From Orbicella franksi (Eukaryota), in NCBI GenBank assembly GCA_964199315.1, contig OZ116708.1:3906001-3970000 (forward strand): a stretch of DNA of 64,000 nucleotides. The letters run 5' to 3'. Of this stretch, positions 61,820 to 62,050 are shown in pieces. The notes under the pieces were generated by a model. That model was not told the origin of the DNA and searched no databases. It saw nothing but the letters and a program-made list of their open reading frames with translations. Positions within the stretch are counted from its first letter, which is position 1. Every line of letters begins with the position of its first letter. A program made the translations under genes and the position numbers.

Positions 61820-62050
61820 TCAAGCCTTTAGCACCGATAGCAAAATGTCCAAACAACCTTCCAACGTGGCGCATGACTTGAATTTTTTAAGACTGCTGCA
61901 AGATAAGTCTTGGTATGACAGACTCAACTCGTCGCCGATGATCGCCAGTCTGTTAGCAACAGTTTGAATCACCTCAGTGTTTTGATGTTTGACTGAGTCC
62001 ACAGCAATGCCTTGTTCTGTGTAAGCAGAGATGTCACTTGGTCGATCCAT
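61820..62050 (-). CDS. 76-aa candidate BH3-only protein
   Basis: AAATCATGG start. Splice acceptor at 62102 (tttacAG) with an upstream in-frame TAA, and an upstream donor CTGG|GTAAGT at ~62461. The sequence VIQTVANRLAIIGDELSLSY fits the BH3 consensus L-x-x-I-G-D-E-[LF]. Confidence 0.6.
   Translation of the reverse strand: MDRPSDISAYTEQGIAVDSVKHQNTEVIQTVANRLAIIGDELSLSYQDLSCSSLKKFKSCATLEGCLDILLSVLKA

Follow-up and report, generated by a model that had tools for sequence, protein, structure and literature searches.

The window analysed here, a 64,000-nucleotide stretch of the genome of the coral Orbicella franksi (contig OZ116708.1, positions 3,906,001–3,970,000), carries near its end, on the minus strand, a 76-amino-acid (aa) open reading frame (ORF) that starts with ATG, ends in CLDILLSVLKA and contains the sequence EVIQTVANRLAIIGDELSLSY (Table 1; positions given without a contig name are those of the window). 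The first-pass annotation had read this sequence as a BH3 motif, and its coordinates and tail agree with the ORF list. It had also described the product as devoid of BH1 and BH2, which stands as well: no NWGR- or GGW-type motif is present in the ORF or downstream of it on the minus strand (six frames, whole window), and a Pfam scan of the protein returned no family above threshold, the Bcl-2 model (PF00452) being unmatched.

Table 1. Features of the 76-aa gene in the window
Feature	Position	Strand	Basis or remark
Promoter module, repeated TTTCGTG (CACGAAA on the other strand)	62596..62645	-	directly upstream of the TATA box; common to the paralog promoter
TATA box TATAAAAG inside the stretch GGCCTATAAAAG	62575..62582	-	invariant in 8/8 aligned contigs
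Predicted non-coding exon 1	62462..62552	-	based on the conserved TATA box and donor; start placed ~25–30 nt past the former
Predicted 5' UTR intron (GTAAGT...ACAG)	62102..62461	-	donor and acceptor invariant in related contigs
Predicted 5' UTR part of exon 2, from acceptor ACAG/GA to ATG	62051..62101	-	conserved acceptor; RNA contig of library X1 reaches 62079
Coding sequence of the 76-aa microprotein	61820..62050	-	stop TGA at 61820–61822 included
BH3 helix, residues 28–46 (I28, V31, A32, L35, I38, G39, D40, L42, Y46)	61913..61969	-	conserved columns, AlphaFold2, predicted interface
C-terminal segment, residues 60–76	61823..61873	-	family conservation; modelled helix with pLDDT 78–80
Minimum 3' UTR	61683..61819	-	RNA-library contigs of X1 (61683–62079) and X3 (61551–61801)

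A search of the whole genome (497 Mb) with the protein finds exactly two family members. The second, a paralog of 69 aa with 52% identity, lies ~3 kb from the first in head-to-head orientation, on the other strand and just past the end of the window (C11:3971012–3971218). The same divergent pair of 76-aa and 69-aa genes is present in another coral (L012), and clusters of two or three copies of the family are found in Oculina, L030, and L033.

The genome also holds 13 loci with a Bcl-2 fold (PF00452), all of them outside the 76-aa ORF. The nearest (C11:3998590–3999219, minus strand; L015), ~30 kb from the gene, encodes BH1 (NWGR) and BH2 (GGW) in a 209-aa frame that is open up to the conserved BH2 intron, together with a BH3-like region of its own. 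This Bcl-2-like gene is adjoined by an 84-aa ORF on the plus strand (C11:4001176–4001430) with its own BH3 signature, IGKVLARIGDRI. Over ~99 kb, a strict BH3 pattern matches only three microgenes: the 76-aa gene, its 69-aa paralog, and this 84-aa ORF. Homology of the 84-aa ORF to the 76-aa family was considered and rejected (E = 0.49).

Elsewhere in the window, a 550-aa single-exon ORF with TPR-like helical repeats occupies positions 54217–55869 of the minus strand. A 52-aa ORF 1.5 kb upstream of it (57321–57479, minus strand) repeats a part of it (…IKLEQS..ACYQNEPDRAL.LIDEAF.FMSEAK), which suggests, by sequence likeness, a duplicated fragment or pseudogene.

Promoter, transcript layout, and RNA

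The structure of the gene was compared with that in seven contigs from related corals, representing at least four distinct sequences, after alignment to the window. DNA identity over the ORF is mostly 0.84–0.89 (0.71 in the bin with the stop codon), and the best-conserved non-coding stretch is the promoter module, at 0.85–0.90. The least conserved part is the interior of the predicted intron, mostly at 0.61–0.75 save one 50-nt bin at 0.88. The splice signals read TGG/GTAAGT at the donor, with the intron starting at 62461, and ACAG/GA at the acceptor, with exon 2 starting at 62101; the start context, CAAATCATGG, is invariant or nearly so across the seven contigs. A single AATAAA is found downstream (61377–61382, minus strand), with the same hexamer at the equivalent place in L035.

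The paralog (L002) has TATA-like, donor, and acceptor signals in an equivalent layout, with AATAAAAGGG where the 76-aa gene has its TATA box, and the two promoters match by BLAST at 75% identity over 194 nt. The TTTCGTG/CACGAAA repeats of the shared module matched none of the transcription-factor consensus sequences tried, and a promoter scan for p53, HSF/HSE, FoxO, ATF4/CHOP (CARE), NF-kB, ISRE, CRE, and AP-1 sites found none common to the two paralogs; the promoters thus lend no support to the relevance for stress or bleaching that the first-pass annotation had raised. Repeats of the cacgaaacac type are also seen midway between the paralogs (63540–63600), and TTTCGTG/CACGAAA copies at L002:1000–1060.

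Downstream of the gene, a conserved block of ~500 bp (60892–61426) accompanies each copy of the family. Its identity is 67–73% to three Oculina copies and 0.74–0.90 in closer corals; it is covered by RNA-library contigs of X1, and two of its elements, a ATTTGCAT octamer and a CCAAT box, are retained next to the paralog as well (L002:2368–2516). The block could serve as a regulatory module 3' of the gene or as a promoter for a different transcript. An Rfam scan of positions 60000–64000 gave no match.

Exon 2 (302 nt) is represented in RNA. Four libraries from three studies (a random-primed metatranscriptome, two of single-cell cDNA, and one of polyA RNA) contain 0.86, 0.76, 0.55, and 0.52 of its sampled words, and nine further RNA runs carry smaller shares. 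In X4 and X8, nearly all matched words of a 1.4-kb query fall inside exon 2, and in the polyA run X8, the sole contig on 2.5 kb spans 61868–62048; this confinement fits a discrete mature RNA and not carry-over of DNA. Contigs from these libraries give no strand, so that the exon 2 signal may come from either one. The RNA-seq support that the first-pass annotation had asked for is thus there for exon 2, in the libraries of several studies, but comes without strand and without the predicted sense intron, the joint of which is in none of the RNA contigs. The same holds for the '5' UTR intron' and 'Kozak-like start' of that annotation, the signals of which are conserved in related contigs although the intron itself goes unseen in RNA. 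The predicted exon 1–exon 2 junction is likewise absent from metagenome contigs by exact and degenerate scans, which is not evidence against splicing in a collection that is mostly DNA, and the homolog contigs L003–L013, L034, and L035 include no spliced transcripts, all being colinear genomic DNA with the intron in place. Sense transcription and splicing of the 76-aa gene are accordingly predicted.

Spliced RNA of the other strand exists in at least library X3, in which a short contig has a plus-strand (antisense) GT..AG joint from 62090 to 62491 and two further contig ends coincide with it. The antisense acceptor sits in a 14-nt insertion that related contigs do not have. The donor, of which the complement in the 5' UTR is conserved in related contigs, is not kept in the paralog. 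We therefore read the antisense splice as lineage-specific.

Conservation of the frame and extent of the family

A match to the BH3 motif is, by itself, weak evidence: in dinucleotide shuffles, the strict pattern is expected 0.43 times per 64-kb window, and 1 of 100 shuffled windows had it within an ORF that starts with Met and is 60 aa or longer. It is therefore conservation that carries the case. When 14 copies of the DNA, taken from several corals, are compared in all six frames, none but the sense frame stays open throughout, and each of the other five has 1–7 stops in almost every copy; an antisense ORF at 61788–61967 (plus strand) was rejected as a candidate, as it is not maintained in other copies. 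Pairwise dN/dS among family copies is 0.14–0.79. The start is conserved, and the position of the stop is constant in related contigs while its codon varies (TGA, TAA, or TAG); most family members stop at 69–83 aa.

Protein searches extend the family well beyond this species. A search of 5.8 billion proteins gave 41 homologs at 62–87% identity, nearly all of 76–77 aa; an exhaustive profile search of 1.84 billion representatives gave 34 clusters at 50% identity, nearly all of 69–99 aa; and a profile-seeded search gave 59 proteins, for a family of ~60 homologs of ~70–85 aa. The homolog contigs that were looked up are from coral-associated assemblies, and no hydrozoan homolog could be named in the profile searches. 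The conservation across related species that the first-pass annotation had proposed to check by tBLASTn and dN/dS is accordingly found, in the number of homologs and in dN/dS as well as in the retention of the BH3 core. We conclude with high confidence that the 76-aa ORF is a real, conserved gene of stony corals and not a chance ORF.

The gene was rightly called unannotated, the only source name on any homolog found being 'hypothetical protein' (Oculina patagonica). That entry, the 133-aa 'hypothetical protein ACROYT_G034173' (CM126644.1, L007:8001–13214), is a fusion model, in which the first half of one tandem copy runs into the greater part of the next one, at a locus of three intact 78-aa copies. 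With 'hypothetical protein' as the sole name and one of the models fused, expression studies built on existing gene models may overlook the family.

Four long forms (P0094, P0042, P0039, and P0099; 99–144 aa) are artefacts of public gene calls, in which in-frame TGA codons, the true stop among them, are translated as Trp and the product continues into the 3' UTR. A Trp at the in-frame TGA of the ortholog in the window or L011 (checked for P0094 and P0039) points to a metagenome gene caller that used a code with TGA as Trp; a spliced 5' end, stop-loss alleles, and A-to-I editing were rejected as explanations. Two very large proteins, P0070 (1900 aa) and P0071 (3878 aa), match only positions 32–48 of the family profile (the BH3 core), five to six times each at E ~2e-4, and may contain repeated BH3-like helices or chance matches.

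The BH3 helix, its predicted groove, and rival readings

Among close homologs, the invariant columns are M1, I28, A32, L35, G39, D40, L42, Y46, L63, and L70. Among members at 29–63% identity, the only columns that are invariant or at least 90% conserved are M1, V31, A32, L35, G39, D40, and L42, with I or V at position 38 and mostly Y at position 46 in divergent members. The core V31-A32-N-R-L35-A-I-I38-G39-D40-E-L42 corresponds to the BH3 signature (hydrophobic-small-x-x-Leu-x-x-hydrophobic-Gly/Ala/Ser-Asp-x-hydrophobic) on an amphipathic helix, and the BH3 register that had been proposed from the letters of one copy is thus upheld as the conserved core down to ~30% identity. Judged from these columns, the BH3 signature is the selected core of the 76-aa protein.

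Outside this core, the leader and the linker are variable across the family, and the architecture of the C-terminal segment is shared. In this segment, C60 and C66 are conserved or frequent, a leucine face is formed by L63, L67, L70, and L74, and a hydrophobic end is followed by Lys or Arg and 0–3 residues. The uncharged run in the tail measures only 6–10 residues, short of what a classical transmembrane or mitochondrial tail anchor requires, and such an anchor was rejected; the earlier description of a short amphipathic tail is apt.

An AlphaFold2 model of the monomer, made with the family alignment, is one long helix over residues 10–75 without tertiary packing (mean pLDDT 74, pTM 0.38), in which confidence peaks at residues 21–40 (pLDDT 86–95) and rises again over the tail (78–80). 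With a single-helix model and PF00452 unmatched, the protein has no Bcl-2 fold. The model fits a protein that would become helical upon binding and that has no fold of its own. A Foldseek comparison of the model with the PDB gave no match, which is uninformative for a lone helix.

The complex was predicted between the 76-aa product and residues 1–175 of the Bcl-2-like protein L015 (C11:3998695–3999219), which is one of the 13 Bcl-2-fold loci and is not thereby singled out as the true partner. It scores 0.78, against 0.01 for the best of three controls (0.00–0.01); of 78 solved complexes, 51 attain the mark used for this score, as do 2 of 108 mismatched pairs. As the predictor may be echoing BH3:Bcl-2 complexes already solved, the score speaks for resemblance to them and not for binding by this copy. 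The three runs share at least 96% of their contacts, and the pLDDT of the partner is at least 55. On the microprotein, the interface consists of residues 24, 27–29, 31–36, 38–40, 42–43, and 46; on the Bcl-2-like protein, it consists of residues 78–97 and 107–118 and the BH1 motif. In the predicted contacts, D40 meets R124 (the arginine of NWGR), N121, and G123; G39 meets G123 and A127; L35 meets I115, A127, and F131; I38 meets M82 and H86; V31 meets L97; and I28 meets V111 and T107. The helix is thus predicted to lie in the canonical BH3 groove, in a likeness of binding mode and not of affinity. The modelling of binding that the first-pass annotation had suggested gives a groove-bound pose, in a controlled prediction with a coral Bcl-2-like protein.

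We consider that the 76-aa ORF probably encodes a BH3-only-type protein of stony corals, in which an N-terminal leader of low conservation precedes the amphipathic BH3 helix (~24–46), and a variable linker leads on to a C-terminal helix that is short and either hydrophobic or amphipathic. Once the protein is made, its BH3 helix would insert into the hydrophobic groove of Bcl-2-fold proteins, where I28, V31, L35, I38, and L42 would fill the pockets, G39 would pack on the BH1 glycine, and D40 would pair with the NWGR arginine. Groove binding would either neutralise pro-survival members or activate Bak/Bax-like ones, leading to mitochondrial apoptosis, and the C-terminal helix probably aids membrane association or masks the BH3. 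In this scheme, binding is predicted in silico, and we infer the pro-death effect, which of the 13 Bcl-2-fold loci encodes the target, how the gene is regulated, and what the tail does.

A different purpose for the helix, in a conserved small protein that resembles BH3 by convergence (a coiled-coil, a helix for another partner, a membrane-active peptide, or a regulator of non-Bcl-2 proteins), is the strongest alternative, and we judge it unlikely. BH3-like motifs are common, also in proteins unrelated to apoptosis; the chance expectation of the strict pattern given above is in keeping with this. The lack of family membership by sequence speaks for the alternative too, as does the single long helix with its second leucine face and two tail cysteines, which are not hallmarks of BH3-only proteins. 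Against convergence, the residues kept at ~30% identity are the groove-contacting positions, including the small G39 and the acidic D40, of which a generic amphipathic helix has no need; the controls of the complex prediction stay near zero; and the named look-alikes by language model (below) are nearly all BH3-only families.

It is very improbable that the locus acts through a non-coding or antisense RNA, to which the ORF would be incidental. The plus-strand joint in X3 with its coinciding contig ends, the unseen sense intron, and the conserved complement of the antisense GT donor would agree with such an RNA; the sense frame that alone stays open in 14 copies, dN/dS below 1, and the conserved position of the stop argue for the protein, and the antisense acceptor lies in an insertion absent from related contigs, while the donor is not kept in the paralog. 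Least probable of all, to the point of being negligible, is that the ORF belongs as a single exon to a larger, multi-domain BAK-like Bcl-2 gene, the BH1 and BH2 exons of which would lie elsewhere. Many Bcl-2 genes do have BH3 on its own exon, and the residues IGDELSLSY, from the end of the motif onwards, resemble those that follow the BAK BH3. Against this reading, the minus strand of the window has no BH1 or BH2 motif downstream of the ORF, the stop has the same position in every copy by way of three different codons, the whole-genome protein search returns only the gene itself and its paralog, and the closest of the Bcl-2-fold loci, 30 kb off and on the other side, has a BH3-like region of its own.

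Returning to the BH3-only reading, a more far-reaching version of it can be put forward tentatively, as a conjecture that we consider unlikely to hold. The family and its paralog would be the main BH3-only initiators of stony corals: Noxa-like two-helix microproteins, the cysteine-bearing tail of which would target mitochondria or mask the BH3 until a redox or stress signal, encoded by a head-to-head pair under a dedicated TTTCGTG-repeat promoter in a cell-death and innate-immunity neighbourhood, where another BH3-only microgene, not related to the family, and a Bcl-2 gene lie within ~35 kb. Host-cell apoptosis is implicated in coral bleaching and disease, and coral caspases and multi-domain Bcl-2 proteins have already been listed and, in part, put to the test; to our knowledge, the upstream BH3-only triggers of corals have not been characterised as a set. 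The family provides a concrete, conserved candidate, with a defined peptide (residues 24–49), a predicted partner 30 kb away, and negative-control mutants. Should its members be the main initiators, they would offer a direct molecular handle on the cell-death decision of corals in bleaching or disease.

Comparison with known families

The only Pfam model to respond to the 76-aa protein is BID (PF06393), with 18.1 bits against a cut-off of 25 bits, over residues 16–46. A sub-threshold BID match over the BH3 recurs in 37 of 39 members, at profile positions 72–100; the family thus matches only 30 of 191 profile positions, which falls short of membership, and BID has a globular Bcl-2-like fold that a 76-aa single helix cannot form.

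The name 'BAK-like' applies to the motif only. The L-A-I-I-G-D motif is there, and the BAK BH3, in the sequence quoted by the first-pass annotation, has the same core and, six positions beyond the Asp, a Tyr; homology to BAK, however, is undetectable in the genome search and by phmmer, which found no chain of BAK or of another Bcl-2 family protein among all PDB chains at E <= 10. The sole phmmer hit in the PDB, the regulatory chain of aspartate carbamoyltransferase (E = 0.34), was rejected as chance. Unlike BAK, the 76-aa protein has no BH1 or BH2, no transmembrane anchor, and no match to PF00452.

By language-model similarity, the top look-alikes are unnamed eukaryotic clusters of 72–75 aa (0.92 and 0.91). 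The named ones are PXT1 (0.86), Noxa/PMAIP1 (0.84), and BMF/BIM/BIK (0.79–0.83, with some PUMA within the BMF cluster), and as these scores are below 0.9, they are leads only. Of the named look-alikes, Noxa, BMF, BIM, BIK, and PUMA are BH3-only families, and PXT1 also carries a BH3-like domain. The vertebrate Noxa/PMAIP1 (~54 aa in humans) shares the build of the coral protein, being very small, with one BH3 helix, no other BH motif, and a leucine-rich C-terminal segment, which in Noxa is a short targeting segment; the coral coding sequence lies on a single exon. Unlike Noxa, the coral protein has conserved cysteines and acidic residues in its tail and no p53-type site in its promoter, and the Noxa model (PF15150) does not match it at E <= 10. 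These sequence tests place the 76-aa protein outside BID, Noxa, and BAK alike.

The core strings of the family appear in no paper of the indexed literature, the sole match being a canarypox virus paper that has RLAIIGD only. For Acropora, the multi-domain Bcl-2 proteins were catalogued by Moya et al. (2016), who named the BH3-only repertoire as an open gap and considered its characterisation 'of particular importance' and, given poor sequence conservation, 'likely to be challenging' (PMC4715348). 'Potential BH3-only proteins' of Acropora and Nematostella are presented in Fig. 5 of a 2022 survey, which stresses the need for experimental confirmation (PMC8998228). These candidates, which may include the coral family, are also small, with an intron-less coding sequence and predicted disordered or helical structure, and were proposed from the motif alone.

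A functional precedent in cnidarians is from Hydra. HyBH3-only-2, likewise a small protein, has a BH3 of the canonical L-x-x-I-G-D form, and binding of its peptide to HyBcl-2-4 was measured at 149 nM; it is the only cnidarian BH3-only protein with binding data in that study (PMC7489894). The Hydra BH3 peptides HyBak1 and HyBax were crystallised in the canonical groove, the mode described there for Hydra, sponge, and human complexes (PMC7489894) and the one predicted for the coral helix. In contrast to HyBH3-only-2, the peptide of which (…ACLRAIGDDIQ…) cannot be aligned with the coral family outside the motif, the coral protein has a binding mode that is predicted only. Placed among these systems, the 76-aa protein most likely represents a new family inside the known BH3-only class, set apart from BID, Noxa, and BAK by the sequence tests above.
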